Shown: positions 820 to 48,718, counted from the first letter of the stretch. The stretch is DNA of 64,000 bases from Paramoeba atlantica (GCA_977017575.1 CDRNVI010000023.1:124001-188000), one strand, 5' to 3'. Program-made: numbers and translations. The notes: generated by a model not told the origin, from the letters alone.

Positions 820-2090
820 TACGGTCCAGTTTACCATACCAATACCCCCGTAATTGCGGTGGTTGTAAAACTACCGCTCTACACTCGATTATTGAAAAAA
901 AAGTGAACAAAAACAGTGAAAATATAAAGAGGAACACAGTAATATAATAGAAGAAAAAAATATAAAAGGGGGCTCCGGTGGACCAAAACTGAAAAAAAAA
1001 TTTGAAAAAAATGGGGGGTCCAGGGGGGGGTCCAGGGGGGGGTCCAGGGGGGGGGGTCCAGGGGGGGGGGCATGGTCGAGCAAATTTTTTCGAAAAAATT
1101 AGTTTTCGAAAAAAAACCGCAGAAAGGGTAGCCGGGGTCTTGGCGCGCATTTTCCACCCCCTACCCCGGGGTGACCCCCCCGCGTATCCGCATGACGGGT
1201 CCGCCAAGTTCGGATTTTTTCGGAAAAAACATTTTGAAAAAAAATTCAACTTGGCGAAAAAAATGACAAAAAAAATATTTTTCCAAAATCGTTTCCCCTA
1301 TTGTATTTCGATAGTTTGGGACCTACACTAGCTTTCTCCGCAGTTGTTTTCGCAAGGTATCACTTCTTCGAACCGTGGTGCGCCCCTCAAAATGACCCAA
1401 TTTTGACTAAAAAAGGTGAAAAAGTATTTTTCGGACCTAAAGGGGCATTTTTGTGTCGAACGAATGGTATGGTTGGAGTCGTATTCTCTACCCAATACGT
1501 GCGGTAGGCTTTCATTCATGCCTGCGAGTGATTTCCCACGCGCAAATGTCGGATTTAGTGCTCTGAGAGCAAAAATATGCGAAAATGACCCCATTTGTAC
1601 CCGAAATTCGGCTATTTTTGGCTATAATCTTTCCGTTTTCCAGGCTAAATTTTCTTTTTTTAGGCTCTTCGTTAAACGCGGCGGTAGTTTTCAACGCGAA
1701 GCGCGCAGCATGAGTGACTTCTAAGTTGAAAGCAACCACCGCGTTTAACGAAGAGCCTAAAAAAGAAATATACCGGGGGGTATATTACGGTGTCCACTCA
1801 GGCTTAATATACCTCCCTCTGACACAAATGCCCAACATCCGAGAAATGGCCTAGCGAAAAGAGTATTTGTAGAAAAAGTAAGGACATTTTTTTGCGTTTT
1901 TGGGCCTAAACAGGACTTTTCTTTGATTTTATAGACACTTTTAGGGAGAAACCGCGCCGCGAAGGGGCGCGATTTCTTTTGTGGAAATTTTGGATTTAAT
2001 AGAGACAAAACACAAAATTGTGTCTACATTAAAGGGGGGGTCACAGTACCTATACCTTAATATACCGTGGGGTATGGTAAGCTGGACAGT
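820..2090. mobile_element. Putative TIR element hosting hairpin-element copy A1
   Basis: gtccagtttaccatacc (~824-840) is the near reverse complement of ggtatggtaagctggac (2071-2087). Confidence 0.4.
851..1768 (+). mobile_element. Hairpin-ended non-autonomous element, family A, core type 1, full length
   Basis: 5' end taattgcggtggttgtaaaactaccgc; (TCCA-G8)n G-run block ~1012-1070; 3' palindrome arms 1661-1695 and 1725-1759 with a 29-nt loop; near-identical to the reverse complement of 32854-33805. Confidence 0.85.
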
Positions 2091-2643
2091 GGTTTAGAAA
2101 AAACAATAACATGACACTATTTCGTTTAGCGTTGAACGCACGTTTCCAGTTATTTTTGCGCACCGAAAAAGTAGTTTCTCTATCAGAATTGTTTCCCATA
2201 CCATTCACGCGCGCCAAGGCGCAAGAAGCAGGTGTAGTATCTGTGATTTTGCCTTTTCTAGACCGAATGCCCTGGCCTTCCACTTATCCCCCGCGATGAG
2301 TATGTTTACTTCTTATGCGAGGCATCCGTGTACAGCCTATGACGGTACTGAACACAATCCGCCGTGTGATACAATTTGTAACATGTGCATTGCGTACATT
2401 TTACTTGTCGAGCGTGACCCATACTGTCACACTTAATAGTATTCACGCGGTTCTAGGACGGGGCTAAGCGGTTGGGTCCGTTTAGTTATTGCTTGTTTGG
2501 CCCTACTGCTAAAAGACATAAAATAGATGTTCTTTATAAAATAGGTGTTCTTTATAAAAAAGGTGTTCTTTTATTTTTTATGCGAACATTGTCTAGTAGT
2601 CCGAGTAGTGCTAGTACCGTGTATTAGTACCGAAATAAACTAT

Positions 2644-2987
2644 TACTGTACCCCCCCCCTCCTGTTTATAGTAGCCTCGACCTCTCCCCCCTTTTATAGG
2701 TTCTTTTTTTGGGCAACCTGGGGAATTTTTTATTTTATTTTCTTGCACCGTCTTTAATATTTTGATATTTATTTTCATATGGTTCTTCGAGGTATGGCGC
2801 GTGTTCGTGCTGGACACTTTACTTTGGAAGAGCGCCGGGGCCCACTTAGCGATTGAATAAATCCTGGTTCCTCGCTCCCGAATGTATGGCGATTTATGTG
2901 CCAACTCTTAATCTTCAATCGCCCTCCCCCCTTTATAGGTTCATTTGGGCAAAAGCGAAGCTATTATAAACGGGGGGGGGTACAGTA
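2644..2987. mobile_element. MITE with TA TSD (CTGTACCCCCCC TIR)
   Basis: TA-ctgtaccccccccctcctgtttatagtagc ... gctattataaacgggggggggtacag-TA. Confidence 0.7.
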
Positions 2988-3205
2988 AATTTTTAGCTAA
3001 AATGTAAAGCGTTTTTAGAACTTATTTTTTATATGTTAGAACTTCTAACATTTAAAAAAAATCTACCCAGTTTAGAGGGGTTGCGTGGGCTGATTAGTAC
3101 AAAACGTATAGTGTCTTTTGGTCCAGTGTACTGTTTATAGTAAAATATATGGCATAATCGCATTGCAAACGTCATCAGATCTTCTAGCTTTCAAAAGGAG
3201 TTGTT

Positions 3206-4559: not shown

Positions 4560-6875
4560 TACCGTTACCCCCCCCCTTACTTATCCCGCATTTTGACCCC
4601 AAAATCAGTGATTTTGTGATAAGTAGCGTACCTGGATAAGTAGCGTACCTGGATAAGTAGCGTACCTGAGTAGTGTACCTTAGGTTGGTGAGTGGTTTTC
4701 GGAAGCGTCCTGCCATAAATGAAATTAATAACATAGAGAAAACAAAGTTGTACAACAAACAGAGAGAAGTAATCGAAATATACAAGGTAAATAAAAAACA
4801 ACGCGAGTGTGAAACTTGATTCTGACACAAATGAAGGCTAAGAGAATGTCATGCACATTATAAGAACAACATCATAGAACACGAAAAAAAGTAGTGCTAA
4901 TTACATGACAAGAAATAAGCGGGGGGAAAAAGTGTAGTCGTTGCTGGTTGTTGATGGCATGGAAAAACATGGAAAAAAAACCAGAAAAATATAAGGAATA
5001 ATATTTTTATAGAATGACATTCCGACCAGCCCAGGAGTAAAAGCGAATGAAAAATATTCGATATGCCTCAATTGAATCTATTCTCATATTATAAAATTAT
5101 CATATTACGCCCGAGTGCACACAATTTTATATCAAAAAGCGCTCACTGATCAGTGTCCGCATCAATCACTTCCTCACCGAAAGAAAGCTGCTGAAAAGCA
5201 TTGGAGACGACTTCTGTCTCCAAAGCAGCTTCTACAGGCGTTGCGCCAAGCACAAGGGTACTACCACGTAGAGATTGTACCCGTTGGGGGGAAATTGTTT
5301 CTGCGCCTCGTAGAAGGTGGGATGAGAGCTTGCGTTCAAATTCCACACCATAGGCTTCTACTGCAGGAAAGGACTGTAGCGCTTCAGTGACAAAACGCGT
5401 GATTTTCTGACGCGTGGGGCGGCGAAACCCGTTCTGAGAGGCACGCCAGGTAGAAAATTTATCCCGGTAATGGTGCTTGAACGCTCGGTTGACTGCAACA
5501 TCCATGAGTTGGATGAGCGAGGTGCAACCTGAAGGAATGAACAAGACATCAACCTCTCGCTCACGAAGGTAAGAAAGAATTTCGTGAGTTCGATGAGCGG
5601 CATAGAGGTCAATCACAAGTAAAGTTTGTCGCGGAGGATAACGCGCATGGTCTAACAACTCTCTTTGAAGCCATGCCAGAAAAGAGTCGCCATTTGTCCA
5701 CCCCGATGCAGTTGTGGTGGCAGTACAACGGTACTTTACAGCTGCCGCGTTGATTTCCCGAGAGATGGGCCCTGTGGAGGACTGCGCCTGCCAGATGAGA
5801 TGAGGGGGCAACATGGTGTGGTCCCAAACGCCACCTGTGCCTCGAACGGAGCGCGCCGCGAAAAAAGCTGTCGTCATTTGGCGTTCCGTTCCGGCTGTGC
5901 GAACTCGCACCCGCCGCGTCCCACGAAGTTCAATTGTAACACTACTTACAGGTTCCCACACAACTCCGGTCTCATCACCCGTGAGGATGACAGAGTAACC
6001 TCTGCGATCGACGTTCATCAGAGTCATCATCTCGAGAAAGTTTCGGACCCGTTCATCAGCATCTGTCGGAACGAGTTGAGTGCAACCGTTTACACGACGG
6101 CAACAAACGTTCGCAAATCGACAAAAGCGCTGCCAGAACTTTTCCTTCCCATTCTCTGTGAGTTGACTGAAATGGTCAAATGTCCCAAAGTATTGGAACA
6201 TCATCGATTTCGTGACCCCGACGAGCGCGTCACGCAAGACCGCAATCATGCGAGAACCCTGAGTGTACAATTCCTGATTCTGACGCGGCGGGTGGAATTG
6301 ATAGGAACTTCCGTGGCCAAGGCGCACAAGCCTCATCCACTCTTCCTTCTTCAGGACAATTTTTCGCACCGTGGAAGGAGTGATGCGAAACTCTGCGGCA
6401 ACTGTTGCTTCGGGCTTCATAGCTTCTATTGCAGCACAAATATTAAGTTTCTGCTGGATAGTAAGCTCGACCCGACTTTTCCGTGGACGGTCTTGTTCAA
6501 CTTGAGCATGGGCCAGTAGTTCAACGTTTGGGATAACATTGACTACGGCATTCGGATCCGGAATTACGACAACCGCCTCTTGTGGTAGGAGTGCGTTGCG
6601 GACCTGCCCTGCATGAAAAACCAGCCGATTCAAGTCAGACATTCAGAGAGAGAGAGAGAGAGGGAGGATGAGTTGTAGAAAAAAGTATTCAAGAGTTGTA
6701 GATAGATAAATACTTTAAAATAGCAACGCATTGTACAGCTACCTCAAATCTAAAACAATAAAAAAGTTCGGAAAAAAGGCTAAGGTCCAGGTACGCTACT
6801 TATCCTTGCGGATAAGTAAGGTTTGGGATTTTGTGATAAGTAGCGTACCTGGATAAGTAAGGGGGGGTAACGGTA
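4560..6875 (-). mobile_element. pogo/Tigger-family DNA transposon, apparently intact
   Basis: TA TSDs at 4560-61 and 6874-75; TIRs ccgttac(C)9ttacttatcc / ggataagtaa(G)7taacgg; subterminal 17-bp repeats gataagtagcgtacctg at both ends; uninterrupted transposase ORF. Confidence 0.9.
5143..6642 (-). CDS. pogo-type transposase (CENP-B-like HTH + DDE_1)
   Basis: 499 aa; ELTIQQKLNI..VAAEFRITPSTVRKI HTH; ILTGDETG, SGWTN..FLAWL, LLVIDLYAAH, FIPSGCTSLIQLMDVAVNRAFK. Confidence 0.92.
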   Translation of the reverse strand: MSDLNRLVFHAGQVRNALLPQEAVVVIPDPNAVVNVIPNVELLAHAQVEQDRPRKSRVELTIQQKLNICAAIEAMKPEATVAAEFRITPSTVRKIVLKKEEWMRLVRLGHGSSYQFHPPRQNQELYTQGSRMIAVLRDALVGVTKSMMFQYFGTFDHFSQLTENGKEKFWQRFCRFANVCCRRVNGCTQLVPTDADERVRNFLEMMTLMNVDRRGYSVILTGDETGVVWEPVSSVTIELRGTRRVRVRTAGTERQMTTAFFAARSVRGTGGVWDHTMLPPHLIWQAQSSTGPISREINAAAVKYRCTATTTASGWTNGDSFLAWLQRELLDHARYPPRQTLLVIDLYAAHRTHEILSYLREREVDVLFIPSGCTSLIQLMDVAVNRAFKHHYRDKFSTWRASQNGFRRPTRQKITRFVTEALQSFPAVEAYGVEFERKLSSHLLRGAETISPQRVQSLRGSTLVLGATPVEAALETEVVSNAFQQLSFGEEVIDADTDQ

Positions 6876-8850: not shown

Positions 8851-8967
8851 AGCAGCCTTACCGATCACAACACTATTTTGAACAAGAATATTAACAAACA
8901 ATTTATTGCTATTCTAGAGTTTATTTTGTTACTGGTGAAAGAGTAGTTGGTCGTTTTCAATGTATAT

Positions 8968-9040
8968 AGAAGTCACTGCCCCTTTGCTTTGAAAACTACC
9001 TCCGCGTTTAACGAAGCAACTAAAAAAGTAAAATTGGCCC
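8968..9040 (-). mobile_element. Degenerate fragment of family A terminal hairpin
   Basis: gaagtcact..tttgaaaactacctccgcgtttaacgaagcaactaaaaaagtaaaattggcc matches the loop and inner arm of the A hairpin. Confidence 0.6.
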
Positions 9041-10720: not shown

Positions 10721-10756
10721 AACGTTTGTAATACCCCTCTTATTAAGACAGTGTAT

Positions 10757-12322: not shown

Positions 12323-13007
12323 CTTCTTTATGTGATATACCCCTTTTCCGTGTCCCCATTTCCCCAGAGACTCGCAGCCTTCTCAAGAATAGGGGTGATG
12401 TCCGTTAAGGATTTTGTAGAGCCCCGGCAATAAACTTGAGAGTAATGTTCGAAGACCGACGGTAGGGGCAGGGGGGACCAATCTGAATTCTTACGTCTTT
12501 GTGACTATTTTTTTGGAAAACTCACCTGACACGAAATCGGGCCACAAATCGGGCACGACGAATTAACCTACGGTAGCGAGGGAGTAGTATCTCCCTCAAT
12601 AAAGTGAAGATTGCAACGGTTCATAGGCACATCCTTCCACCACCATTTCCCACGTACATGTGAGTCCCGGGCTTTAAGCAGGATTAAAGGATTCCATAGA
12701 CCGAAAAGTTACCTTTCTTCTTCGTTTTTGATAGGAAATTGACAAGGGTAAGGATGGACGGCCCATAACTCATACCTTGGTGGTTCATGAACCAATGAAC
12801 CACTTCATGAACCATTTCATGAGCCACTGTTTTCATGAAATGGTTCATGAACCAGTACTAACGAGGGTGCTGACAGGAGTGATATCAAGGGTTGATGGTA
12901 CGGCACGGTGACAAGGGGTGAGGACAAGGAGCTCTTACTACTGCTACTAGCATATCATGGAGACGGAATGTAATAAACCACCGTCCGGGTTATTAGACTA
13001 CCTAGGA

Positions 13008-13150
13008 GGTATAATAAGTGTCCCTAGGTATAATAAGTGTCCCTAGGTATAATAAGTATCCCTAGGTATAATAAGTATCCCTAGGTATAATAAGTATCCC
13101 TAGGTATAATAAGTATCCCTAGGTATAATAAGTATCCCTAGGTATAATAA
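13008..13150. repeat. 19-bp tandem repeat, 7 full copies plus a partial
   Basis: Unit ggtataataagt(g/a)tcccta, head-to-tail with no spacers. Confidence 0.95.
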
Positions 13151-13877
13151 CTTTGCTTTGCAAAAAGGGTAAAAAAAAATTCGCGCTGCGCGGCGCGTTT
13201 TTTTCATATTGCCCACAACATGTTATGATCCATTGGCAACTTTCCCTCTTGCGCCTGGGGACGCCTGGGGAAACGCGTGCGAGTGGGGGGGTAAGTTTAT
13301 TTTCTGGGGCTTCAGGGATAAAAGAATAGGAAATGCCACGAATACATGTATTTTCGTGGTTATTATACCCCAACTGGTCAAAACTCTTGACAATATCAAT
13401 CTGATTTCTTGGTAAGTTCTCCTCATTAAAATTGAAATTCACGCAACATTGAAATTTACGCGCAGTGAGGGAAAAGATTGTGTTGCTTCGTAGTCGACAG
13501 CAAAGAGCATGCACCAGCATGTTTTTACGTGTCCAGGCGAAGAAGTAAACCTTTCGGAGTGTTTATGTTAGGGCGATCGTCCGTAATCCCGTCTTTGTGG
13601 CATAAATCAGGGGGAAATCAGAAAAATTGTGAAAAATACAAGATTTTGTCTACCAAAAAACAAAGTGTTCTATGTGCATTCGAAAATCCAAACAACGCAG
13701 ATTCCGTGCCTGCACGTTCATGAGCCCTGTTCGAGAGCTCTTGAATGCGCTATAACTTTCCAAAATGGGCCAAGTTATACAAATTTCAGACCCTTCCTGT
13801 TTTCTCAAATCCTGTTTCCAAAATGGGCCAAGTTATACAAATTTCAGACCCTTCCTGTTTTCTCAGACCCTTCTGTT

Positions 13878-14538
13878 TTTTTTCGAAAAAAAACCCGCAG
13901 AAGCGGTAGCCGGGGTCTTGGCGCGTATTTTCCACCCCCCTACCCGGGGGTGACTCCCCCGCGTATCCGCAGGACGGGTCCGCCAAGTTCGGATTTTTTC
14001 GGAAAAAAAAAATTCAAATTGGCGAAAAAAATGGTAAAAAAGATATTTTTTCAACATTTTTTCCCTATTGTATTTTGAGAGTTTGGGACCTATACTAACC
14101 TTCTACACCGTCGTTTTCGCCAGATACCCCTTCTAGCCGTGGCACGCCTCCCAAAATGGCCCATTTTTGACCAAAAAGTGCGAAAAAGTAATTTTCGGAC
14201 CTAAAGGGGTCTTTTTATGTCAAAAGAATGGTGTGGTTGGAGTCGCATTCTCTACCCAATACGTTCAGTAGGCTTTTATTCACGCCTACGAGTGATTTCT
14301 CACAGGCAAATATCGGATTTACTGCTCTGAGAGCAAAAGTAGGCAAAAATCACCCCATTTTTACCTGAAAATCGGCTAATTTTGGCTATAATCTTTGTGT
14401 TTTCTTTAGCTTTCCATTTTTTCTTTTTTAGGCTCTTCGTTAAACGCGGTGGTAGTTTTCAACGCGAAGGGCGCAGCATGAGTGACTTCTAAGTTGAAAA
14501 CAACTACCGCGTTTAACGAAGAGCCTAAAAAAGAAAAT
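13878..14538 (+). mobile_element. Family A copy A2, core type 1, 5'-truncated
   Basis: Colinear with 1085-1768; terminal hairpin 14429-14527 plus an extended outer arm aaaaagaaaat. Confidence 0.85.
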
Positions 14539-14779
14539 TATACTTAGGAGGTACAATAGGTGTCCCTAGGTATAACCCGGACGGCGGTTTAAAATATAAT
14601 TACTATTTATAATATACATACTAACTTAAATATATTTTAGATTATTTTTACATGTACATGTAATGCATAAGTTTATACACATATTGTATATATTACTATA
14701 AACTTTATAGAAGAAGAATTAACATGTAAAGTTTTATAAGAATACTAGTACTTACTATACATGCATATTTAGTTAACAC

Positions 14780-17700
14780 ATGCAGGAATCGAGATCTAGG
14801 TTGCAGGAGCTAATTAAACTCCTCCATCAGGCGAGCGCAGCCTCCGCGCAGCATCTAGAAAGTATTGCACGACTGGAAAAGCTTTATCAGGATCCAGCTT
14901 GCGACGTATTGGACACACTAGTATCCCTATTTCGAGCGACTGAACCAGAGGCCGTAGCGGAACTTGAGAGATCCATAACTAGCGGGAATTATGAACAAAC
15001 ACAGCTCTATGCTGGGTACGCAATAAAAGTCCTGCTACGAAAAAGAAAAGAATTATCTAATAGTCGAACACTTCTTCCTGTTATACTCGAGCAACTCAAC
15101 AGCAATTCGTTGGGTATTCAAAAATGTACGAGCTCCATCCTTTCGACTTTACTCGACAATGAACATAGTATGCAGCAAGGGCCTGCGACAACCGGGATCA
15201 TGTTTTCAGAAGTACTGAATCAGATCCTTGACGCGCTTTTATCGCAGAATGTGGACCTGAAGACAGGCTACGTACTTATGCTACAAAAACTCTGCGAAGA
15301 TTTCGGTTATGCCGTGATACTTCATTCAAAAGCAGATGAAGCAGTCTCTTTGTTGTGTATTTTGGTACAGAACCGAACGGATGAAACCTTAATTGCTTTA
15401 CATTCTTTAGTCGCTCTTCTTAGTTGTGCTCAAGACGCAGCGGAAAGAAGCGTCCAAGGTCTCTCTACTGAAACCCAGATAATTCGGGATAGATTGAGAC
15501 TGTACAGCGACCAAATCTTTCAGTCACTTATACAGCTTCTCTCTGTGTCAGACATCACTTCACCCGAAAAGACTATTCCTTGGACTGACTTTACCAAGTC
15601 TGCCTGTACGATTTTTGTGCTACTTGTGCGGTATCCCGGTGCCCAGTTTCTATCCTCCTTGCCTGCTTTAATGGAGTTCGTTCTTCTACAGCTGCGAAAG
15701 CACTTGGCTCAATTCATACCATATTTTAGTCAAATTTTGCCAACGGCGCAGGTTACCTCAACAAGTATTACCTCTGCGCCATCGTACAGTACTTCCGAGG
15801 GCATTGCACTGGAGGCCTGTGAGCTATGGAATGCCCTACTTGCGTGTCATTTAGGAACGGAGCTTTTACATTCAAAGCTTCCGGAAATCGTTCCCGTGCT
15901 TCTGCTGTGCATGGTCTATTCAACAGAGGACGTCTCGATGCGCATGAGTACAAAAGACCACACTCAGGTTCCGGATGCTGAAACACACAAAGGTGGTAAG
16001 AAGACGTCTGGGGCTAACGCTCAGGGACGAAGTATCAAGGAGGAAGAACACTTGGGAGAAGACGAATCTGAGGACGACGATGATAGTGACAACGTCCCTG
16101 ACTGGAATTTGCGTCAGTGCGCCGCACTCGCTTTGGAGGAATGTGCCTCGATGTATGGAGAAGAATTACTCCCTGTGCTCCTTCCTTGTCTGTCAACTCT
16201 GTTGAGCACTCCCCTTGAAAGCATTCCTGCTGAACACGCAGGGTGGAGACTGCGGGAAGGAGCAGTGTTGGCCCTTGGGGCTGTCGCAGAAGGGCTGGCC
16301 AGTATGCTGGAGTCTCAGCTTCCGACATTGCTCCAGTCCGTAATTTCGACTGTGGCTGACACCTCTGTCACGCACCCACTACTACGCAGTACATGCTTCT
16401 GGACCATAGGACAATACGCGTCTTATTTTACGCAACCAGAGCACGCCGATCTATGGCGCACAGTTGGGATGGATTCGCTCTCGGTGCTTCTCTCCGTTCT
16501 CTTCCCATGCCTCCTGGCGGAGAGCAAAACAGTTCAAGAGTCTGCGCTTGCAACGCTTCAAATCCTACTCGAAGAGGTCTCCGCTGATTCTTTGGAGCAG
16601 AATCTAATAACAAATTTGCTTCCTATATTGCCCCGACTCTTTACATTGTACCAAAACAAGAACCAGGTAATTCTACTACAGCTAATTGGAAGTCTGTGTA
16701 GTCGTTGTACCGTGCTAGAATTGTGCCCAATCACCGTGTACAAAGACCTGTGCGCCCTTCTTTATCACCAATTTGCTGCTATTCAAGACACTTCTCCTCT
16801 TCTTGGGGACCTCCTTGCTACCTTGGCTGTCCTTTTCCGGTGGTACCAACCTTCTAGCGCAAGCGAGGAAATAGCTCCTTCCCTAGTCAGCTTTGGAAAG
16901 TCTGTCCTTAGCAGGCTCTTGCCTCTGTTTTCCCATAACCTCCACGTAAGACAGCAATCGATTGTAGCTAAGGAAGAACCCGAAGAGGAGTACATTTTAA
17001 TTAGCATGGGGAAAATGCTTGATGCGCTCACCACAGTGCTGCCCCAGGTCGTATCCGCCATTGTCCTTGAAAATACCACCCACAGCAGTACGTTGCTACG
17101 ACTTCTCCACCTCTGTGCGTGCGATCCCTTAAGCGGTCCCCTTCGAGCACAAGGCCTTGATTCCTTCGAGGCCTTGTTACACACCTTCCCCAACCTCTTT
17201 TCCCACCCCCCAGAGGGTTTCACCAACCGAGAGCTTGTCTACGAAGCCTTATGCAAAAACCTCCTTCTCCCACCCCCCTCCGAGCCCAACAACCCACCCA
17301 CCACCCACCCCACCCTCCCCCTCTCCGAGACCGCTTACCGCTCCGCTACCCACCTTGCGGTTTCTTTCGCCCAATTCGCCCACACAACTTCGAATCCTTC
17401 TCCTTTCCCGACCACCACCACCACCACCACCACCCACAACAACAACCACAACAACCCCACGACCCCTCCCCCCTCCCTCTCCCCCCTCTCCCCCCTCGCC
17501 CTCTCTCTCCAGCACACCCTCTCCCACCCCTCCCACCCCCGGGCCCTCCGTGACAGCGCCGCCCTCGCCTGGGCCCGTCTCGGGAACCTCCCCCCCTCCC
17601 CCCCCCTCCTCAACGCCTTCCCCACACTCTTCCCCGTGTGCTGCCGCGCGATCCGTAGCCGTACTCGTAGTCGCACTCCCCACACAGCGACCACCACGCT

Positions 17701-19537: not shown

Positions 19538-19711
19538 GGACGAATCTGGACCGGATCCCTCTGTGCGGCAAAATTCTTCGAGCCTTTTCCATATCCTTGC
19601 TCTCGCTCAAAAGGCGATATTAATTCTTAATATTTACTGTCACCCCCCTTTATACTTCAGGGAGGTGAACCTCCCCCTTTGGAAGATGATAGGACGGCGT
19701 AGAAATCTAGT

Positions 19712-19985
19712 ATAGGCCCCAAACTCTTAAAATACAATAGAGGAAACGATTTTTAAAAAATTATTTATTTGCCATTACTTCATATTTTCTCTACCCTGAT
19801 CAAAAATAAGGAAAAATGAAAAAGGAAAATGATAATGAAAAAATCAATTTTCTTTTTCGGGATTTTCATTTTCCTTTATTTTTAGCCAGGGAAGTACTGT
19901 GTTCCTCTCTATATTTTTACCAATTTCGTTCCCTTTTTTTTCTGTAATCGAGGGTAGAGCGATAGCTATACGACCACTGCAATTA
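19712..19985 (-). mobile_element. Old, internally deleted family A copy (5' end retained)
   Basis: tactgtgttcctct..aatcgagggtagagcgatagctatacgaccactgcaatta is a diverged A 5' end; aggccccaaactcttaaaatacaatagaggaaacg matches the A core. Confidence 0.6.
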
Positions 19986-21180: not shown

Positions 21181-21305
21181 AAAACGACTACTCTCCTGTG
21201 TATTGATCACTCAATCAGTAAACCCCCCTGACGGTTATTCTTCCCTCTTTCCCCTTACCTTTCCCCCCCACACCTTTCCTCTTCTCCCCCTTCCCCCTCC
21301 CTTCC

Positions 21306-26860: not shown

Positions 26861-27565
26861 TTATTGCGGTGGTTGTATAACTACCGCTCTACCCTCGATT
26901 ATTGAAAAAAAAGTGAACAAAAACAGTGAAAATATAAAGAGGAACACAGTAATAAAATACAAAATATAATAGAAAAAAATATAGAAGGGGGCCCCGGTGG
27001 TCCAAAACTGAAAAAAAATATTCAAAAAAATGGGGGGTCCATGGGGGGGGGCATACGTCGCGAAATTTTTTTCGAATTTTTTGCTTTTCGAAATCGAGCG
27101 TAGGGAAGTGGTAGAGTATACCGCGGCGATAATTTTCCACCCCCCCTGGGGGTACCCCCTGGTACGCGCGGGAGGGGTCCGACAAGGTCGACAAGGACAA
27201 AAAAAATCCGAAATTTTTGGGGTGACCAAAAAAAAAAATTTTAGTCCCAAAAAAAAGTAAAAATCTTACTTTTCCAAAATCGACTCCTAAAACGTGTTTT
27301 AGGAGTTTGGGACGTTTTTTGCGTCAGATTCGCCTCCTACCCCTACTGGTAAGGCATCCAAAACGGCCCAAATTCGGGTTAAAATTTCATATTTTTTGCC
27401 GAAAAATCGAGGTTTTTACCCCAAAAAAATAGATTATGCATGATCTTTTCGCGATTTTTCTTTTTTAGGTTCTTTGTTAAACGCGGCGGTAGTTTTCAAC
27501 GCGAAGCGCGCAGCATGAGTGACTTCTAAGTTGAAAACAACCACCGCGTTTAACGAAGAGCCTAA
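26861..27565 (+). mobile_element. Family A copy, core type 2, both ends present
   Basis: 5' ttattgcggtggttgtataactaccgc; different interior; terminal hairpin ending gagcctaa; inserted in a 19-bp host tandem repeat (atctattYaactagtRttt) with no added duplication. Confidence 0.85.
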
Positions 27566-27599
27566 ATCTATTTAACTAGTGTTTACCTTACTAAGTAAG

Positions 27600-27790: not shown

Positions 27791-29210
27791 ACAACCATTT
27801 TTCTCCATACTTTCATGTTTTTGTGGTTTATTTGAATGTGTGCAAGTTTAAATAGTCTTCTAATTTCTTTATGCTCAAGCAATATTTCTGTAGAAACATC
27901 AGTAGCTGCTTAATAGAATTTTTCAAACCTCAACAACACGAATAGAAGACCGACTAACCCTACAAGTTAAGTTACTAATGTAACTGATTCATACGATACT
28001 GTATTACTATTTCGAGTTTGCATACTATTTCGTTAGTTTGTATGCTATTTCGAGTCATGGTAAGGAGTTTTTACTAGTCCTCATCTATTTCCGGTGTGTC
28101 TCGGTCAGAAGGAGTGGTCCGCATGGATTGATGCCCCCGCCGCCTTGACTGACATTCTCGAAGGACCGGCGAGAAGTTCCGTGTTGAGGGAGTGGTGCAA
28201 GGGTACCGTGAGATTTCTTCAGGATGGGCGCGGGATGTCCCGCCTGCTGGTCAGGCCTGCCAGCGGACTTTTCGTCCATAGGGAAAGCCTCAGAATCGAA
28301 AATTCTACGTTAGGTGGAGGCCCACGAACTCTTTCCGCAAGCTGTGCGGTATGGGAAGGAAAAGTATCACCCGAAGAACGAGGACGTTTTGTGTGCACGT
28401 GAGGAGTATAATTGGTTTTGCCCTGCCTGGGGATACGTCGAATGCCGTACACGACACACAGATCATCTTTCTTTCGCGGGCACCAACGTAGAGGCATCAA
28501 AGAAACTATGCAAATGATTTTTTAAGGCTTCATGATTGGGGGATCTGTTAAGACAATTGTTCGTGGAACGTTAATATCCCGTAAGTGCATTCTGCACATC
28601 GATGTAGAGCTTCTGTAATCTTAGCTATAATATCTTCAACTTCTGAATTTCCACATAACTGGTCTCCTCCAATAGTAATTTTGGGCTCAGAACTTTTGGA
28701 GTGTACACATGATGCCCTGAGCACAAGGAATAGCGGGTCAAAAGGGCATATTTTTGTACCAAATAGTTTGTTCAATGAAATTTCTCCCCGACGAGTAGAA
28801 AAAAGTTCTTAAACTAACAAAACGTTTTTACCCTTCCTCATTAATATTGTACAGAAATATTACAAATGCTTGCATTGCGGGATTGTAATCACCTTTCACC
28901 TTCGCATGACGCTGAAGAGTTTTTAAAAATTCTAGGAAGGAATGTTCATTCCGTAAGTCAATGGGAAGATTTTACTCACTCAAATATATCACACCCCTCG
29001 CGGTAGAAGCTCATATTGTTGCACGAAATGTAATTTTAAAGGTGGTGCTAGCTTTCTTTTTATAACGGTCCCTTTGTAATGGAGGACTAATAAATTATTT
29101 AAATTTATTCAAATATTACAAGAATCGTTTTCAGTCAGTCGGAAGAGTTGGTACAAAAATATGCCCTTTTCACCGAATAGCGGTTCGTCATTGGGGCAAA
29201 TATAGTCTAA

Positions 29211-29810
29211 TAGGCTCTTCGTTAAGCACGGTGGTTGTTTTCAACTTAGAAGTCACTCATGCTGCGCGCTTCGCGTTGAGAACTACCACCGCGTTTAACG
29301 AAGAGCCTAAAAAGGAAAATTTGGCCTGGAAAACTGAAGAAAACGGAAAGATTATAGCCAAAAATAGCCGATTTTCGGGTAAAAATGGGGTCAATTTTAA
29401 CTATTTTTGATCTCAGAGCACTAAATCCGACGATTTGCGTGTGGGAAATCACTCGTAGGCATGAATGAAAGCCTACCGAACGTATTGGGTAGAGAATACG
29501 ACTCCAACCATACCATTCTTTCAACACAAAAAGGCCCCTTGGGGTCCGAAAAATACTTTTTCACCTTTTTTAGTCAAAAATGGGCCATTTTCGCGGGCAT
29601 ACCACGGCTCGAAGAAGAGATAGCCTGCGAAACCAACTACGCAGAAAGCTAGTATAAGTCCCAAACTATAAAAATACAATAGGGGAAATTTTGGAAAAAT
29701 ATTTTTTTTCGCCAAGTTGAATTTTTTTTTATAATTTTTTTTCCGAAAAAATCCGAACTTGGCGGAACCGTCCTGCACCGCGGAACTGTCCTTTACAACC
29801 ACCGCAATAA
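29211..29810 (-). mobile_element. Family A copy, core type 1, internally deleted, hairpin end plus outer part of the 5' end
   Basis: Hairpin from 29211 (taggctcttc); core to ~29775; tttacaaccaccgcaataa at 29792-29810. Confidence 0.85.
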
Positions 29811-31757: not shown

Positions 31758-32825
31758 CTACTTAACTTCTTCTAGTGTACCTTCTGCTTCTTTCTTTATA
31801 ACGTTTCTTGGTCCTTTCTTTGATCTCTTCGTTTTAAGAAAAGGGAACTCTGCCAGGGCTTCCATGTATTGCATTCGAATATTTTCACGATTTTCTTTGT
31901 CAGTTCGGGAAGGGACCTCAAAACGGCAATTACATGTGCGACCCATGGGCCGAACAAAGGCTCGATTTCTGTCATCGTTGGACCAGAATTGTACGGTCCC
32001 AGGGTCCACCAATATTTTTTCCTCAATGGCGAAGAGAAGACACTCAGCATTCCACATAAGTCTAAATAGTTTCGCGACTACGGCATGAGTTCGCGCACAA
32101 AAGTGCATAAACTGATACCTATCAATGTACGCGTTGAAGCGCTCCACAGTTCCGCGCAGGCATGCGAAATATTGATTTAACTTTGCTTCCTGGGTGGGGA
32201 GCGCTGGTTGTTTGTGCGCACGTTTGTACGGGAATATCGTGTGTGAATTAGCGATATACGCTAAATCTGCGGCAATCAAATCGTGATCGCTGTGTGGCAT
32301 TGGTTCTTTAGTGACCCACGCATGGCTTGGGAGTAATGATGGAACAAAACTCTTAGAATCATGCTGTGCGCCAATAGACGGACCTTGGTACCATATAGGT
32401 TGTCCTGCTACATTGAGATACAACTGCATTTGAAGGATTTTTGCATGATGTTTCCCACTGTAAGTGTCCTTATCTCCTCGTACATATATTGGCGTGCCGT
32501 CCACAATCGTAGTAACACGAGTAAACTGACGGTGCTGATACATGAGGCGACGTTCAGGCTGACTAAAATTTTCCTTGAAACACTGATCAAGGGCCTTATG
32601 CATGTGACGACGAGAAGAAGTGTCAGGTTGCACATTACCGAACCATAATCGCATTATATATCTTATCTGATCATCAGTGCAATTCATGTGCATTGCGATC
32701 AATGCTGCGATAACCCCGTATGTATCCACCAACCCAATCTTGTTCATGAGATAGATAATAAGGGTGGAGGTAAAGTCAGTGAATGCCAAGCATTTATCGT
32801 CAGTGCCAATTGGAAAAGTTTCCAT
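31758..32825 (-). CDS. PIF/Harbinger/ISL2EU (IS5-like) DDE transposase
   Basis: IVDGT..YSGKHH..QMQ, GAQHDS, AADLAY, FPYKR, LNQYFACLRGTVERF (DDE_Tnp_4 pattern); the upstream region is interrupted by a family A copy. Confidence 0.8.
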   Translation of the reverse strand: METFPIGTDDKCLAFTDFTSTLIIYLMNKIGLVDTYGVIAALIAMHMNCTDDQIRYIMRLWFGNVQPDTSSRRHMHKALDQCFKENFSQPERRLMYQHRQFTRVTTIVDGTPIYVRGDKDTYSGKHHAKILQMQLYLNVAGQPIWYQGPSIGAQHDSKSFVPSLLPSHAWVTKEPMPHSDHDLIAADLAYIANSHTIFPYKRAHKQPALPTQEAKLNQYFACLRGTVERFNAYIDRYQFMHFCARTHAVVAKLFRLMWNAECLLFAIEEKILVDPGTVQFWSNDDRNRAFVRPMGRTCNCRFEVPSRTDKENRENIRMQYMEALAEFPFLKTKRSKKGPRNVIKKEAEGTLEEVK

Positions 32826-32853
32826 GATGTAATAAATAGTAACTTGATATTTT

Positions 32854-33805
32854 AGGCTCTTCGTTAAACGCGGTGGTTGTTTTCAACTTAGAAGTCACTC
32901 ATGCTGCGCGCTTCGCGTTGAAAACTACCGCCGCGTTTAACGAAGAGCCTAAAAAAGAAAATTTAGCCTGGAAAACGGAAAGATTATAGCCAAAAATAGC
33001 CGAATTTCGGGTAAAAATGGGGTGATTTTCGCGCATTTTTGCTCTCAGAGCACTAAATCCGACATTTGCGCGTGGGAAATCACTCGTAGGCATGAATGAA
33101 AGCCTACCGAACGTATTGGGTAGAGAATACGACTCCAACCATACCATTCTTTCAACACAAAAATGCCCCTTTAGGTCCGAAAAATACTTTTTCACCTTTT
33201 TTAGTCAAAATTGGTTCATTTTGAGGGGCGCACCACGGTTCGAAGAAGTGATACCTTGCGAAAACAACTGCGGAGAAAGCTAGTGTAGGTCCCAAACTAT
33301 CAAAATACAATAGGGGAAACGATTTTGGAAAAACATTTTTTTTCTTATTTTTTTCGCCAAGTTGAATTTTTTTTCAAAATGTTTTTTCCGAAAAAATCCG
33401 AACTTGGCGGACCCGTCCTGCGGATACGCGGGGGGGTCACCCCCGGTTAGGGGGGTGGAAAATGCGCGCCAAGACCCCGGCTACCCTTTCCGCGGTTTTT
33501 TTTCGAAATCTAATTTTTTCTAAAAAATTTGCTCGACCATGACCACCCCCCTGGACCCCCCCTGGACCCCCTCCCTGGACCCCCCCCTGGACCCCCCTCC
33601 TGGACCCCCCCCTGACCCCCCCCTGGAACCCCCCATGGACCCCCCATTTTTTTCAATTTTTTTTCAATTTTGGACCACCGGAGCCCCCTTTTATATTTTT
33701 TTCTTCTATTATATTACTGTGTTCCTCTTTATATTTTCACTGTTTTTGTTCACTTTGTTTTCAATAATCGAGGGTAGAGCGGTAGTTTTACAACCACCGC
33801 AATTA
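32854..33805 (-). mobile_element. Family A copy, core type 1, full length
   Basis: Reverse complement of 851-1759 with a longer (CCCCCCCTGGA)n block at 33541-33645. Confidence 0.88.
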
Positions 33806-34709: not shown

Positions 34710-35215
34710 AAATAATCAAAAAAATGGGCGGTTCATGAGGGGGGGGCGTACGTCGTTTTTTGAAATTTTCAAAATCGAGCGCAGGGAAGTGGTAGAGTAT
34801 GCCGCCGCGATAATTTTCCACCCCCCCCCACCTGGGGGTGACCCCCCCTGGTACGCGCAGGAGGGGTCCGACAAGGTCAAAATTCTCGAAATTTTTGGGA
34901 TGACCCAAAAGAATTTTTTGACCAATAGAAAAATTAAAAATATTATTTTTCCAAAATTGATTCCTAAGTCGTATTTTGAGAGTTTGGGACCTCATCTACC
35001 ATTCTGTGACGATTGTTTCATCAGATGCGCTTCCTAACCCTACTGGTAAAGGAAAATCTAGCTATTTCACCCAACGAAACTAATTCTTCGTGATCTTTTG
35101 GCAATTTTTCTTTTTTATGCTCTTCGTTAAACGCGGTGGTCGTTTTCAACGCGAAGCGCGCATCATGAGTGACTTCTAAATTGAAAACAACCACCGCGTT
35201 TAACGAAGAGCCTAA
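34710..35215 (+). mobile_element. Family A copy, core type 2, 5'-truncated
   Basis: Colinear with ~27025-27565; terminal hairpin ending gagcctaa. Confidence 0.8.
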
Positions 35216-35300
35216 ATGTGATGTCCAGCTTTACCTGTTTCACCATTCATCCGCAAGCAGCACAATCCTTTTGTATTTTACACATTTTACTCCCCACCCT

Positions 35301-37575: not shown

Positions 37576-37587
37576 ACGACACTGACC

Positions 37588-37790: not shown

Positions 37791-38179
37791 TTTATCACAG
37801 TTGATCTTCTGAGAAATGTCAATTACAATGGTTTGGCCTGCTGATGATTCAACTCAATCACAGGTAAGTATTTCGAACCATGCGCGTCCTTCTAAAGTCA
37901 GGGGTGCTATGCTACCGCAAGAGTACGAGCTAGTCCGACTATTCGCAGATGTGAAGAAGCCACATTACTCCTGGAATGTCAATACCCCTGCGTGTGAGTG
38001 GTACGGAATTAAATGGGAGAATCGATACAGCACACAAGTCTACAAAATCAATTTGAAATGGTTCCGCGTTGGGGGTAAACTCCATTTGACGTATCTACCC
38101 TACACTGTCACATATTTCTAAAGATACAGTTTCTTACAATAAAGATACAGTTTATTACCAGATACAGTTTATTACAATA

Positions 38180-38281
38180 AAGATACAGTTTCTGTACCTT
38201 GTTGGTACATTTTCCCTTTAGTTCATCTTTTCTTTCCCCGGCAACGGGCATAATCTTACTGTTTTATATGCCCGTTGCCGG
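38180..38281 (+). ncRNA. SL RNA (mini-exon) gene-like sequence, unit 1
   Basis: aaagatacagtttctgtaccttgttg|gtac matches the conserved 3' part of the kinetoplastid SL exon (..ACAGTTTCTGTAC..TTG|GT); downstream 15-bp perfect stem 38238-38281; canonical AAC 5' end absent. Confidence 0.6.
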
Positions 38282-38671
38282 CCGGCACTAAGGCCGAAAC
38301 TGTCCCTCTTTCTCGGAGAAGTAGGGGACGCGCTTCCACCCCATCACCCCTCCCCGGCTCACTCCTTGAGTGGGTTTTCTTCCCTCCCCGGCTTTCTTCC
38401 CTTCGCGCCCTTTTCTTCCCGGGGAGCCATGCGCCATGGTGGCCTCCCTTGAGGACCACTGGGCGTGGCTCTGCCTCGTCTTATCGCGAGGCAGCGGTCG
38501 GTTGCAGTGCGCCCCTCCGGCTGCGTAAAGAGAGGGCGAGTTGCCTGGACCCCCTCTACCGACAGTCCGAGCTAAACCCCCTTGGTGCGACATCCGTCAA
38601 TACGGAATGTGCCGATGATATCGGCTGTCGCATCAAGGGCTGTATCTCTGCGCCAACGAGCGCATGAACAT

Positions 38672-38774
38672 CAAAAGATACAGTTTCTGTACCTTGTTGT
38701 ACTTTTTCCTTAGTTCATCCTTTCTTTCCCCGGCAACGGGCATACTCTTACTGTATTTTCATGCCCGTTGCCGG
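38672..38774 (+). ncRNA. SL RNA gene-like sequence, unit 2 (splice donor damaged)
   Basis: caaaagatacagtttctgtaccttgttgtac, one G of the G|GT junction missing; 14-bp stem 38730-38774 conserved with a changed loop. Confidence 0.5.
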
Positions 38775-40053
38775 CCGGCACTAAGGTCGGAACTGTCCCT
38801 CTTGTCGCTGAAGCAGGGGACGCGCTTTCACCACTTCACCCCTCCCCGACTCACTCCCCTGGAGTGAGTGTGCTTCCCCCTCTCGGCTTTTTTTCGACTT
38901 GCCTTTTTCCTCTCCGAGAGGGCCATGCGTCACGGTGGCCTCCCTTGAGGACCACTAGACGTGTCCTCCGCCGACGAGACTCGGCTCTCTGCACCTGGCG
39001 GTCGCCCAGCTCTCCGCACCTCGGCTCTGTCGCAGCTCTCTGCACCCGGATTGCCCCCGAAACTGTAATATGGGGATTACGCATCCGGCTCTCTGCACCT
39101 GCACATGACAACCGAGCTCTCTGCACCTGGGACGTCAGCTCTCCGCACCCGCACACCTCCGGCGAGGACGAAACCTCACATGATCCACCCGTCGTATGCG
39201 GGATAAGGACATGGTGAGCAAATCTCTGCACTATAAGTGCATGATAAAACACGGGGCCACTAATGATTTTACTGGTACAGTATGTCTAGATTCACTCCCA
39301 TCTTCGCTTGAATACCTGAATCTTGCCACAAATCACTTCACAGGGCCAGTAAATTTGACATCCTTAACACAAAGTCTTCTTTATCTTTACCTTGAAGAGA
39401 ACAATTTTTCAGGGGATATTTGCCTTAGTCAATTGCCAAGGCGAATCAGTCACATCTGTCTCAACAATAATACTCTGACGGGCAAGCTGGAATTGCAGCA
39501 TTTACCACCTACGCTGCACTATCTTGGCCTTTCGGCGAATTTATTTCGCGGATATTTAAATTTCGACTCTCTTCATGGAATTCTGAGTCTCTATCTGGAC
39601 AACAACGAAGCACTTCACGGAGAACTACGCAAAGAAGACCTCCCGTGGGGTGCGTATCTTTCGGTGAGGGGTACTGGTATCACACTGCACCGGCGAAAAG
39701 AGCTTGCTTATCCATCGAAAAGAAAAGTACATTTTCCTTGCATGAAACTTTGACTGATTTAAATGATTTCCTGAATTGAGTTACTCAGATTAAACGGGGA
39801 CCCGGGGTAACATACTTGTAGCACCATAACATACCAGGGCCTATGTTACCGGGTGGTATCGTGAGCAAGGGGTAGATAACATACCCACCTCTGAATTTCG
39901 GGATTTCGTATGAAAACGACTTCCGCATCGATTAGGTGGTTAAAGGGTTACTTCATAACATTTATGATACTGATTTGCATTTATGGTCACTATTATCCGA
40001 AACATCTATCATTTGCGTTAGTTGTACAGAATTGATATTCTCTTACGTATTCA

Positions 40054-46204: not shown

Positions 46205-46496
46205 GGCCATGGTCGAACAGAGGGGGGCGGAAGTGATCGTATGAGTAAGTGTACGGAGATTATGTGATGGACGACGGTGTGCAGTGCAAATGTCAAGTAC
46301 AGCAATCTAAAACTGTGATGTGATGGGAGTATCTAGAGGAAACCGTGCATATTTCTTTCACCCAACTTTTTTTGAGGAAGGATTTTATTAAAATGTGTGG
46401 ATGATTAGAGAGCATACATGTATGTTTGGGATTTATTAGATACTGATGTATTGCTAGACATTTACAATTTTATAAATTAAAATATTTTTAATTACC

Positions 46497-47927
46497 ATGC
46501 CCCTTGCCTTGGCGCACACTGTTCAAAAACTCGAAAAAAGAAAACGTGTACAACCTTGTTACACGAAAGAGCAAAAGATGGAGTTCGCACGGAAAAGTAA
46601 TGCTTATCCAAATACCGAACAAGCTGCAAGAGCACTTGGTGTGTCAAGTACCGCTCTTCGAGAATGGAGAGCAGGTATAGTGAATCCCGTAGCTTGTTTC
46701 TCGAGAGAGAGAAAACTCGACTTTGTTGAACAGACGAAAAAATACGCAAAACTATCAGATGCTGCTAAAGCCTTGGGTATACCTGCTAAGACTCTCTCAA
46801 AGTGGCGCGTGGATCAAAATGGCGCGAATCTTTTAGGAAGTACTGCAAGGGATCGATCGGGCCCTGACAACTCTTGTCTCCCTAAGTCTTCCTCTCCACC
46901 CCAGAAATACAATACAAAGACGCATTCTTCATCTGTTTCTCAAAGTGAGTGCAATACTGAAGGCAATGTGAAGCCCGCAGAAAACAATTGCTATACTCAT
47001 GAAATATTTCAAAATGGCCCTTTGGAAGATGCAACACGCTCTTCTTTCGACACGCATGTCGAGGCTCCCAACCATTACCAAAGTTTGATTCAGTCGGCGG
47101 AACACGTTGAAATTCCATGGCTTCTGCCTGAAATAAATCCCGAATTAGTGCGCAGATTTAAAAACTACAACGAACAGCAAGTTTTTGACCACGTAGACGA
47201 TTTGATTGAAGAAGGAGAGCGAATCCTTCAGGGCTTGGAGGAACAGAAATTACAAGAATTGGCGCTCTTCTGGTCGCCTCACCGAAAATTGCGGTATATA
47301 CTTTGGGAAACCCTCGCGCCTCGCATTTTGTTAGAATCCCTTCACAAGGCCTATGGCTATCATCTTGAGCTAAAGGAGTTCGAGGAACTGTACCACGCGT
47401 CCATTCGAAACACATGGCCCTGGCTTCTCTCCTATCCCTACTCTGTTCGTAGAGATGTTCTTTTCTGGTGTGGAGATGTCACCGACGTGGACTGTAAACT
47501 TCGAGGCTATATGGAATACACGTATTACTTGTACCAGCGAAAAGGGGTATTGTACCCCGTAAATAAGAAAACAGAACTAAAACAAGAAACTGAAAATGAT
47601 ATGAATAATGCATCCGTCCTGTCCTCACAAACACTTGAGGATACGTTGCGTCCTTTTAGGGGTTCCGAACCTCCAACGGATCTTTGGGACTTTTCTTGTC
47701 TAGAAACTCATAGTGATATGGCGGAGCGAGTTCAAACAGAGGCAGAATTCAATGGTTTTCAGAAAAAATGGCACATTGAAATGGCACGAGCCTACTGGAG
47801 ACTGTTTGATCGGTCTCCAGTAGGCTCGTGCCATTTCAATGTGCCATTTTTTCTGAAAACCATTGAATTCTGCCTCTGTTTGAACTCTGAGAATGATACT
47901 CTCCGTTTTTTGGGTATACGTGCGTAA
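46497..47927 (+). CDS. Protein with two tandem transposase-type HTH repeats
   Basis: YTKEQKMEF..AARALGVSSTALREW and FSRERKLDF..AAKALGIPAKTLSKW; no DDE domain seen; C-terminus runs through a perfect palindrome. Confidence 0.6.
   Translation: MPLALAHTVQKLEKRKRVQPCYTKEQKMEFARKSNAYPNTEQAARALGVSSTALREWRAGIVNPVACFSRERKLDFVEQTKKYAKLSDAAKALGIPAKTLSKWRVDQNGANLLGSTARDRSGPDNSCLPKSSSPPQKYNTKTHSSSVSQSECNTEGNVKPAENNCYTHEIFQNGPLEDATRSSFDTHVEAPNHYQSLIQSAEHVEIPWLLPEINPELVRRFKNYNEQQVFDHVDDLIEEGERILQGLEEQKLQELALFWSPHRKLRYILWETLAPRILLESLHKAYGYHLELKEFEELYHASIRNTWPWLLSYPYSVRRDVLFWCGDVTDVDCKLRGYMEYTYYLYQRKGVLYPVNKKTELKQETENDMNNASVLSSQTLEDTLRPFRGSEPPTDLWDFSCLETHSDMAERVQTEAEFNGFQKKWHIEMARAYWRLFDRSPVGSCHFNVPFFLKTIEFCLCLNSENDTLRFLGIRA
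47728..47887. repeat. Perfect 75-bp inverted repeat with 10-nt spacer
   Basis: Arms 47728-47802 and 47813-47887; spacer tgtttgatcg. Confidence 0.95.
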
Positions 47928-48377
47928 GCGCATTTTTAAAAAAGGCCTTTATAGAATTTTCTTTATGATCATTAGTTTAACTCATTATGCTAACTAAGCA
48001 CTCATTTTTGTATGATATCACTAAGCTTTATACTTTTTTTTAACTAAATATCCTTTTCTCTTCAAATCGAGACTCTGCTTTTCAGTTTCATTTTTGCTAT
48101 TATTCCTTTTTGCTATTGTTCCTTGCGCTTTTATGTGACCAATCTCCTTCACAATCGAGCAACCTTTTTTCTCGCCAGAATGTTGCCCGAACTTTGGGCA
48201 TGTAAAAACCCAACCTGTTATAATTATTTTCTTATCTTCTTTTCTTTTCTTTCTTGACAGAATAAATACATAGAAATAGAGGGAGTGCGCGTGAAATCTC
48301 GATGACATCTCGCGAAACCTCGGTGAAACTTCGCCACCCGCATCCCCTCAATTATTATAGTTATAGCTTTAACTATT

Positions 48378-48718
48378 TAGGCTCTTCGTTAAACGCGGTG
48401 GTCGTTTTCAACTTAGAAGTCACTCATGCTGAGCGCTTCGCGTTGAAAACGACCACCGCGTTTAACGGAGAGCCTAAAAAAGAAAAATCGGCAAAAGAAA
48501 GATGGGGATTAGATGAATAATCAATTTTTTTGGGTGAAAAAGCTGGATTTTTTGGCAAATATTCCGAAATTTTTTGGGCCGAATTTGGGCTGTTTTGGAT
48601 GCCTTACCAGTATGGGCAGGAGTCGAATCTGTCGACAAAAACGTCGTAGAATGGTAGCTGAGGTCCCAAAATCTCTAAATACGGTTTAGGAGTCGATTTT
48701 GGAAAACTAATATTTTTA
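48378..48718 (-). mobile_element. Family A copy, core type 2, 5'-truncated
   Basis: Hairpin from 48378, then ttttggatgccttaccagt..ggagtcgattttggaaaa matching the reverse complement of ~27270-27460. Confidence 0.8.

Follow-up and report, generated by a model that had tools for sequence, protein, structure and literature searches.

What moves a family of short non-coding elements that end in a very large hairpin, lie in both orientations at many loci and leave no duplication of the target? The question was raised by a 64,000-nt stretch of the Paramoeba atlantica assembly GCA_977017575.1 (CDRNVI010000023.1:124001-188000; C23:124001-188000 in our numbering of the 248 contigs, 45.7 Mb in all), read on one strand and referred to below as the window. 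A first-pass annotation, made from the sequence alone, had proposed that the family is non-autonomous, is mobilized by an HUH-type enzyme via single-stranded DNA and does not belong to the canonical Helitrons. That proposal was supported by empty sites without duplication and by a 12.9-kb unit that has the same ends and encodes a Rep domain, with an HUH motif and two tyrosines, joined to a PIF1 helicase (RepHel). With a probability of about 0.87, we conclude that the family consists of non-autonomous Helitron2-type (HLE2) elements, which are mobilized in trans by the RepHel of this 12.9-kb relative located elsewhere in the genome.

When the window was searched by BLAST with a reference copy (~851-1770), all nine annotated pieces were recovered: three full copies, four 5'-truncated copies, one 5' fragment and one remnant (Table 1, in which coordinates follow the end definition derived below). 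The 3' palindrome, described as having 35-nt arms and a 29-nt loop, was confirmed and is a stable DNA fold, with -44 kcal/mol as single-stranded DNA (z = -9.2 against shuffled sequences). At the 5' end, bases 856-864 pair with bases 869-877 in a mini-hairpin (-8 kcal/mol, z = -4.7) that was conserved across 57 unique 5' junctions. It had been noted that this mini-hairpin is built from the words of the large arms, and the exact relation could be specified: read as reverse complements, its first arm corresponds to a word of the right arm of the 3' hairpin and its second arm to a word of the left one, so that the 5' end amounts to the 3' hairpin collapsed, inverted and in miniature. The 5' inverted-repeat word begins 2 nt from the end and pairs with bases 4 nt downstream. 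Among the unique junctions, the two T's preceding GCGG were present in 57/57 and 56/57 cases, TTGCGG formed the element start in 56/57, and the base at -1 was A in 55/57, with farther positions merely A/T-rich. On the 3' side, the sequence past the arm mirrored the copy's own left flank, as its reverse complement, over a length that varied, and after this T followed nearly always. The elements end in A-rich tails of variable length, and CTRR is absent.

Two descriptions of the ends and interiors had to be amended. The two types of interior do share the same termini, as stated, but they are not wholly unrelated, being weakly similar in part. The loop starts with GCGAAGC in most copies; however, the coding copy does not conserve this word and no GCGAAGC mini-hairpin forms in the predicted fold, so the argument from a stable mini-hairpin was not supported and no conclusion was made to rest on it. 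Most length differences between copies arise from a variable G-rich microsatellite of GGGGGGTCCAG units in the element interior. A search of the genome_contigs and metagenome_contigs collections for an exact 31-nt hairpin pattern gave no match.

A sequence 98-99.7% identical to the whole window is present at C14:140001-220000 (L053-L060), representing the other haplotype or a recent duplicate. Clean empty sites were found for three insertions and comprised twelve empty sequences (1 + 5 + 6), none of which indicated a target-site duplication. At copy A, the filled site reads ...GTAA-TTGCGG...AAGAAA-TATACC and the empty C14 allele ...GTAATATACC, which splits at the join into ...CCCCCGTAA on the left and TATACCGG... 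on the right. The empty sites for the copy at locus L024 (one allelic and four paralogous) read ACCATTATTGTATATCC, and the six paralogous empty sites for the L035 copy read CTAGTATATAAAAAT. The corresponding joins, marked here by a bar, are GTAA|TATACC, CATTA|TTGTAT and CTAGTA|TATAAA, with TT lacking at 2/3 of them. Insertion is therefore between a host A and a host T, with the element starting at TTGCGG and with neither duplication nor loss of host bases; this A|T model is the only one with a constant target that fits all three empty sites. At G|T junctions, which occur in type-2 copies, the host T is constant and the last element base varies.

Three other definitions of the site were considered and rejected. 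A 2-bp AT duplication fits most junctions, where A-rich tails are followed by the host T, and was excluded by the L024 empty site together with the G|T junctions. A strict T|T target with both T's supplied by the host was excluded by the copy A and L035 empty sites, and an element start at ATTGCGG by the L024 empty site. The absence of a duplication had originally been argued from the copy at 26861; there it was only weakly shown, as the host 19-bp repeat has two units and the other haplotype is complex, and it is at the three empty sites that it is firm. A search with the flanks of copy G (32850-33802) gave only the filled C14 allele and no empty site, the L027 flank had no second copy in the genome, and blocks 26829-28117 and 48364-48785 showed complex haplotype differences without a clean empty site.

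The same evidence bears on the idea that the elements are deletion derivatives of a DDE transposon of the window (pogo-like or Harbinger-like), in the manner of miniature inverted-repeat transposable elements, or mere segmental duplications. DDE_1 and DDE_Tnp_4 frames do occur in the window, and one full copy abuts a Harbinger-type frame. However, this explanation is refuted by the three empty sites without duplication, and the asymmetry of the ends, the unrelated flanks of more than 50 copies and the possession of both ends by a RepHel-coding unit also oppose it; we consider it extremely improbable.

No partner enzyme had been seen in the window, and none is there: the Pfam Helitron_like_N model gave 29 matches in the genome, of which 0/29 lay inside the window. 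Two of the matches, on contigs C43 and C41, lie within a 12.87-kb unit. It is 99.8% identical between its two copies over 10 kb, with unrelated flanks at the two loci. It begins with the family 5' end after a host A and closes with the family hairpin and a 5-nt tail before a host T. In the C43 copy it contains an open frame of 2975 codons (2975 aa), which is split into two frames in the C41 copy. A Pfam scan of the 2975-aa frame identified Helitron_like_N (E = 5.5e-21), PIF1 (E = 8.5e-25) and DUF6570 (E = 5.4e-11, above the Pfam cut-off). The HUH motif reads HFH at 1826-1828, within VVECQKRGALHFH, the two-tyrosine motif (YxxKYxxK) reads YLIKYMSK at 2041-2048, and the Walker A motif reads GGPGTGKS; all are intact. 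The Rep motif reads G-A-L-H-x-H and carries neither the S diagnostic of Helentrons nor the L diagnostic of Helitrons. No Exo_endo_phos match, which would indicate an AP endonuclease, was obtained in the scan of the whole frame.

Relatives of the enzyme were sparse by word-indexed protein search, which returned only three, and an exhaustive HMMER search was needed; with the Rep region as query, this identified 547 relatives at E <= 1e-10. The nearest full-length relatives were only 24-31% identical, and the DUF6570-Rep-PIF1 design was present in 4/5 of those scanned. In a comparison with solved structures, the match to Helraiser was weak and limited to the helicase (E = 1.3e-7). Downstream of the RepHel frame, an Rfam search found no ribozyme, the only hit being a sub-threshold match of a microRNA model to the hairpin itself.

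For the classification, the published definition of Helitron2 comprises two hairpins, terminal inverted repeats that are short and asymmetric, the 5' one lying 0-2 bp from the end and forming the 5' hairpin, and a T start (PMC3627910). The two-hairpin design that had puzzled the earlier reader is this published signature. According to HELIANO, DUF6570 is specific to HLE2, and the usual targets are T-T for HLE2 and A-T for HLE1 (PMC11417382). The family and its coding relative show the general features of the Helitron superfamily, with an HUH and two-tyrosine Rep fused to PIF1, no duplication, and termini common to the autonomous copy. Of the features particular to HLE2, the 5' hairpin formed by an inverted-repeat word within 0-2 bp of the 5' end is present, and the DUF6570 domain in the RepHel serves as a proxy for the protein group. 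The placement in HLE2 rather than among canonical Helitrons thus follows from the two hairpins, the shared end words and DUF6570. An origin from IS200/IS605- or IS91-type elements would call for a helicase-free Y1/Y2 transposase, and the ends are shared by one enzyme only, a eukaryotic RepHel to which a PIF1 helicase is fused.

Several points weigh against this placement or against the proposed partnership. The empty sites have an A|T target, as in canonical Helitrons, and not the T-T that is usual for HLE2. The 3' inverted-repeat word lies inside the hairpin arms, a variant arrangement, whereas in HLE2 it directly precedes a short 3' hairpin, about 20-30 bp from the end. The HLE2 grouping is drawn from the DUF6570 marker and the end structure as stand-ins for a phylogeny of the protein. 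The 12.9-kb unit is itself composite, bearing an incomplete copy of the short element at either end and, ahead of the frame, a complete internal hairpin. Its first part is a short-element copy that is nearly full but has no right arm; next comes a second leader, 80% identical, which closes with the complete internal hairpin immediately ahead of the frame. Past the frame, a truncated left arm precedes a partial copy of the short element, and it is this copy that provides the working 3' end. That it is this RepHel lineage, among those of the genome, that mobilizes the family is a presumption, and mobilization as such is deduced from sequence comparison.

The internal hairpin of the C43 unit lies at C43:152700-152830 (C43_146001 about 6718-6820), just upstream of the RepHel frame. 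An element that stopped there would be short and non-coding, and the 0.9-kb family may have arisen in this way.

The A|T target raises the alternative that the family is a canonical Helitron (HLE1) with unusual ends, having the classical target and a hairpin ~11 nt from its 3' end. In addition to the target found at all three empty sites, the mode of the tail after the hairpin (11-14 nt) is near the canonical hairpin-to-end distance. The ends themselves speak against HLE1, since the 5' end is TT instead of TC, the 3' end has no CTRR, and a 5' hairpin and inverted-repeat words exist. The protein points the same way, with DUF6570 both in the RepHel and in 4/5 of its nearest scanned relatives and with the Helraiser similarity confined to the helicase. 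A canonical Helitron is consequently judged improbable, and the Helitron2 assignment was retained.

The family is abundant. A 106-nt hairpin probe found at least 40 copies at 100% identity in the assembly and 1179 first-look candidates, a figure in which both strands of the near-palindrome are counted; the hairpin loci of the assembly number roughly 590. A probe specific to interior type 2 gave 289 candidates at 88-97% identity. Flanks were unrelated among more than 50 family copies, and an independent public assembly contains the same element and a Rep fragment. The C14 copy of the window carries copies B, C, D, F, G and H, lacks copy A, and shows complex differences at E and I; copy E lies inside block 26829-28117, which the second haplotype is without. 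Copy A is hence a young insertion, absent from the second haplotype, and the difference in insertions between haplotypes indicates that the family was recently active.

Presence/absence differences between the window and C14 were located at 855-1766, 26829-28117, 38120-39252 and 48364-48785, and C14 holds an extra copy of window 4618-6859. Head-to-tail arrays with recurrent junctions were frequent (L029, L030, L051, L052 and C41:241-244k); in these arrays, short 5' family fragments of 36-110 nt directly precede full copies.

By analogy with established Helitron behavior, the HUH domain would nick the top strand at the junction of host A and element T and bind the 5' end covalently, and the PIF1 helicase would peel the strand off in the 5' to 3' direction. 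The large 3' hairpin would form in the displaced strand and, with pairing to the 5' words, mark the stop. The strand would then be cut a few bases past the hairpin and rejoined into an A|T site. The 3' cut or join point is not fixed.

Tail lengths across the family ranged from 2 to 16 nt, rarely reaching 35 nt or more, with a mode of 11-14 nt in young copies, and the tails always mirrored the element's own left flank. The templated tail in 40 full type-1 copies was 4-16 nt long, mostly 9-14 nt, apart from two long cases (19+ and about 35-41 nt); type-2 copies had 3-11 nt, and the window's older copies 2-5 nt. For copies C, F, G and H, the tails were identical in both haplotypes (4/4 shared copies compared), showing that they are stable after insertion and not assembly noise. 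Inheritance of the tail was judged by nearest-neighbor comparisons among the 40 copies, in which the internal G-rich microsatellite disturbs the alignment. The L035 and L033 copies, one substitution apart, had tails of 12 and 11 nt, and those at L036 and L050, three substitutions apart, had tails of 16 and 12-13 nt; both coding copies had their 5-nt tail in common. Private base changes were mirrored in left flank and tail at L082/L083 and in a partial copy near C43:168.9k. The 35-nt tail at L041 matched the type-1 left flank and not that of the coding unit.

Longer palindromes and rearranged hairpins were also found. A probe composed of loop, arm and 35-nt tail detected at least eight loci with a palindrome that reaches 35 nt or farther to each side, and at least two copies with the loop inverted relative to the interior. 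Loci named by this probe include C8:153.9k and 154.8k, C52:313.5k, C71:209.0k, C39:245.5k, C38:41.3k and C37:294.2k. Such flipped-loop hairpins accounted for 2/83 of the hairpins read and lie at L047 (C12:953430-954835) and C43:~168.9k. In a public contig (L096:2790-3150; ENA ERZ24900291 ctg3595l), the left side of a copy had gained a 16-nt reverse complement of the host satellite on its right, lengthening the palindrome arms to about 58 nt. Growth of a palindrome in place, and with the opposite direction of copying, thus occurs as well.

The tails may derive from a variable cut in long-stemmed source copies, from priming by the 3' end of the hairpin during transposition, or from template switching after insertion. 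Under the last of these, tails, long palindromes and flipped loops would all be products of host replication or repair acting on inserted copies, by quasi-palindrome template switching or recombination between arms, and would say nothing of transposition. The palindrome grown in place from host DNA at L096 would fit this explanation, a crossover between the 35-nt arms could flip loops, and variation between copies in the number of units in terminal homopolymer runs has already been reported for Helentrons (PMC4067079). On the other hand, tails of 11-13 nt are already present in very young polymorphic insertions, at which the host has lost no bases; this is an argument for most tails being brought in by the element. 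The identity of tails between haplotypes at all four shared copies, the shorter rather than longer tails of older copies, and the different tail lengths of near-identical copies at different loci also speak against a host origin. We regard a host origin as a tentative explanation with somewhat less than even odds.

The rare flipped-loop copies and the one palindrome grown from host DNA suggest hairpin-templated synthesis. Conceivably, the giant 3' hairpin is more than a stop signal, and the free 3' end on the excised strand primes copying, mostly short and at times long, of the element's own left flank before it is joined to the target; we consider this rather unlikely. If it were true, the ragged tails, the palindromes of 35 nt or more and the flipped loops would be footprints of a linear, hairpin-ended intermediate, and a eukaryotic rolling-circle transposon would have a side reaction resembling the "rolling hairpin" of parvoviruses. 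More generally, the family offers a natural experiment on Helitron2 end recognition, as the 99-nt hairpin stop signal repeats the words of the 5' hairpin and the 5' end is exact, in contrast to a 3' join that shifts by roughly a dozen bases. Tails made during transposition would provide a direct report on free-3'-end chemistry, a step unseen for this transposon group.

The nature of the host adds to the significance of the family. The Pfam KMP11 model had two matches in the genome at E ≈ 5e-43 and none in 14 control genomes. A 21-nt query, which we take to be the kinetoplastid spliced-leader motif, matched the genome 204 times compared with 0 for the reversed control, and the matched units resemble spliced-leader RNA genes. 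For an aminopeptidase encoded in the window, the best named relative (42% identical) was EukProt entry PhF_6, presumably a prokinetoplastid isolate, and the next named relative was a euglenid. From KMP-11, the spliced leader and the aminopeptidase, the host can be read as a kinetoplastid-like euglenozoan with no close sequenced relative. The dispersal of the 204 motif copies over the genome suggests a dispersed or mobile spliced-leader gene family. A spliced-leader-RNA-like unit also starts the 1133-nt block at window 38120-39252 that is missing in the C14 haplotype; behind its exon-like end ...AGATACAGTTTCTGTACCTTGTTG come GTAC and a stem, and ahead of it lie tandem, degenerate repeats of its start.

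Kinetoplastids have been stated to be without Helitron transposases (PMC8788227), and trypanosomatids to lack DNA transposons altogether (PMC12278014). The present genome, with KMP-11 and a kinetoplastid-type spliced leader, carries hundreds of Helitron2-type copies, has a RepHel frame that is open, and shows haplotypes that are not alike in their insertions. It follows that at least one deep branch of the kinetoplastid group contained Helitrons and that they were active there.

The features of the family in the window are collected in Table 1.

Table 1. Positions of family copies in the window and of the end structures of copy A
Feature	Position	Strand	Details
Full copy A, interior type 1	854..1768	+	915 nt, first T of TTGCGG to last tail A
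5' mini-hairpin of copy A	856..877	+	9-nt arm, 4-nt loop, 9-nt arm; one G.T pair
3' hairpin of copy A, 99 nt	1661..1759	+	arms 1661-1695 and 1725-1759, loop 1696-1724 (29 nt)
Variable 3' tail of copy A, 11 nt	1758..1768	+	reverse complement of left flank 1649-1662; host T at 1769
Remnant B of 3' hairpin, degenerate	8967..9035	+	
5'-truncated copy C, intact 3' hairpin	13880..14538	+	reference positions 259 to end; tail 12-14 nt; adjoins 19-bp satellite
Old 5' fragment D	19694..19982	-	diverged 5' mini-hairpin end and internal piece, without 3' hairpin
Full copy E, interior type 2	26864..27566	+	tail 4 nt
5'-truncated copy F, intact 3' hairpin	29211..29776	-	reference positions 346 to end; tail 2 nt
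Full copy G, interior type 1	32850..33802	-	tail 5 nt; in both haplotypes
5'-truncated type-2 copy H, intact 3' hairpin	34710..35216	+	tail 4 nt
5'-truncated type-2 copy I, intact 3' hairpin	48376..48720	-	tail 4 nt; complex difference in second haplotype

The satellite adjoining copy C has the 19-bp unit AGGTATAATAAGTGTCCCT and lies at window 12969-13169 and 14540-14590; the same satellite flanks family copies at two other loci, L018 and L021. Long C-rich low-complexity tracts occur at 17457-17635, 21262-21674 and 33541-33650. Frames of other DNA transposons were located at 5143-6642(-), 31758-32825(-) and 46497-47927(+). They comprise a pogo-like frame (DDE_1 with a CENP-B N-terminal domain), a Harbinger-like frame (DDE_Tnp_4) and an HTH_Tnp_1 protein, which are notable in a kinetoplastid-like genome; copy G sits directly upstream of the Harbinger-type transposase frame. 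An Rfam search of the window found no RNA family.

Among known systems, the nearest is Helitron2 (Bao and Jurka 2013, PMC3627910; e.g., Helitron-1_CRe and its short derivatives), which HELIANO places within HLE2 (PMC11417382). The family resembles it in having a hairpin at each end, a 5' word placed 2 nt from the terminus, a T start and no duplication, and in the association of abundant short non-coding derivatives with a same-ended single RepHel frame that has DUF6570 upstream of Rep and no endonuclease. It departs from published Helitron2 elements in its very large 3' hairpin, the arms of which measure 35 nt (47 nt and more with the tail) compared with a short stem; in the position of the words complementary to the 5' hairpin, which lie inside both 3' arms and not upstream; in a stem that is paired to the very 3' end, with a tail of variable length; in the A|T target; and in its apparent host, a kinetoplastid-like euglenozoan.

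The Helitron2 elements FoHeli1 and FoHeli2 of Fusarium oxysporum (PMC5148889) likewise have ends that are non-canonical and carry asymmetric inverted repeats. Their target contains AT (TNAT|A) and leaves the first T ambiguous by one base in the same way; they too have been recently active and show tandem and self-insertions. They differ from the present family in their fixed 3' ends, in which the authors saw no variation, in the absence of a giant hairpin, and in an unrelated sequence. Helentrons and their short partners HINE and DINE-1 (PMC4067079) share the subterminal inverted repeats with a 3' stem-loop, the high-copy short derivatives and the terminal runs that vary in number between copies, whereas their proteins carry a C-terminal AP endonuclease and their target is T-T. 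With canonical Helitrons (Helitron1/HLE1, e.g., Helraiser), the family has in common a rolling-circle HUH two-tyrosine RepHel, the A|T target, the absence of duplication and a 3' hairpin near the end; it differs from them in lacking 5'-TC and CTRR, in possessing a 5' hairpin and DUF6570, and in the weak, helicase-only match of its RepHel to Helraiser.

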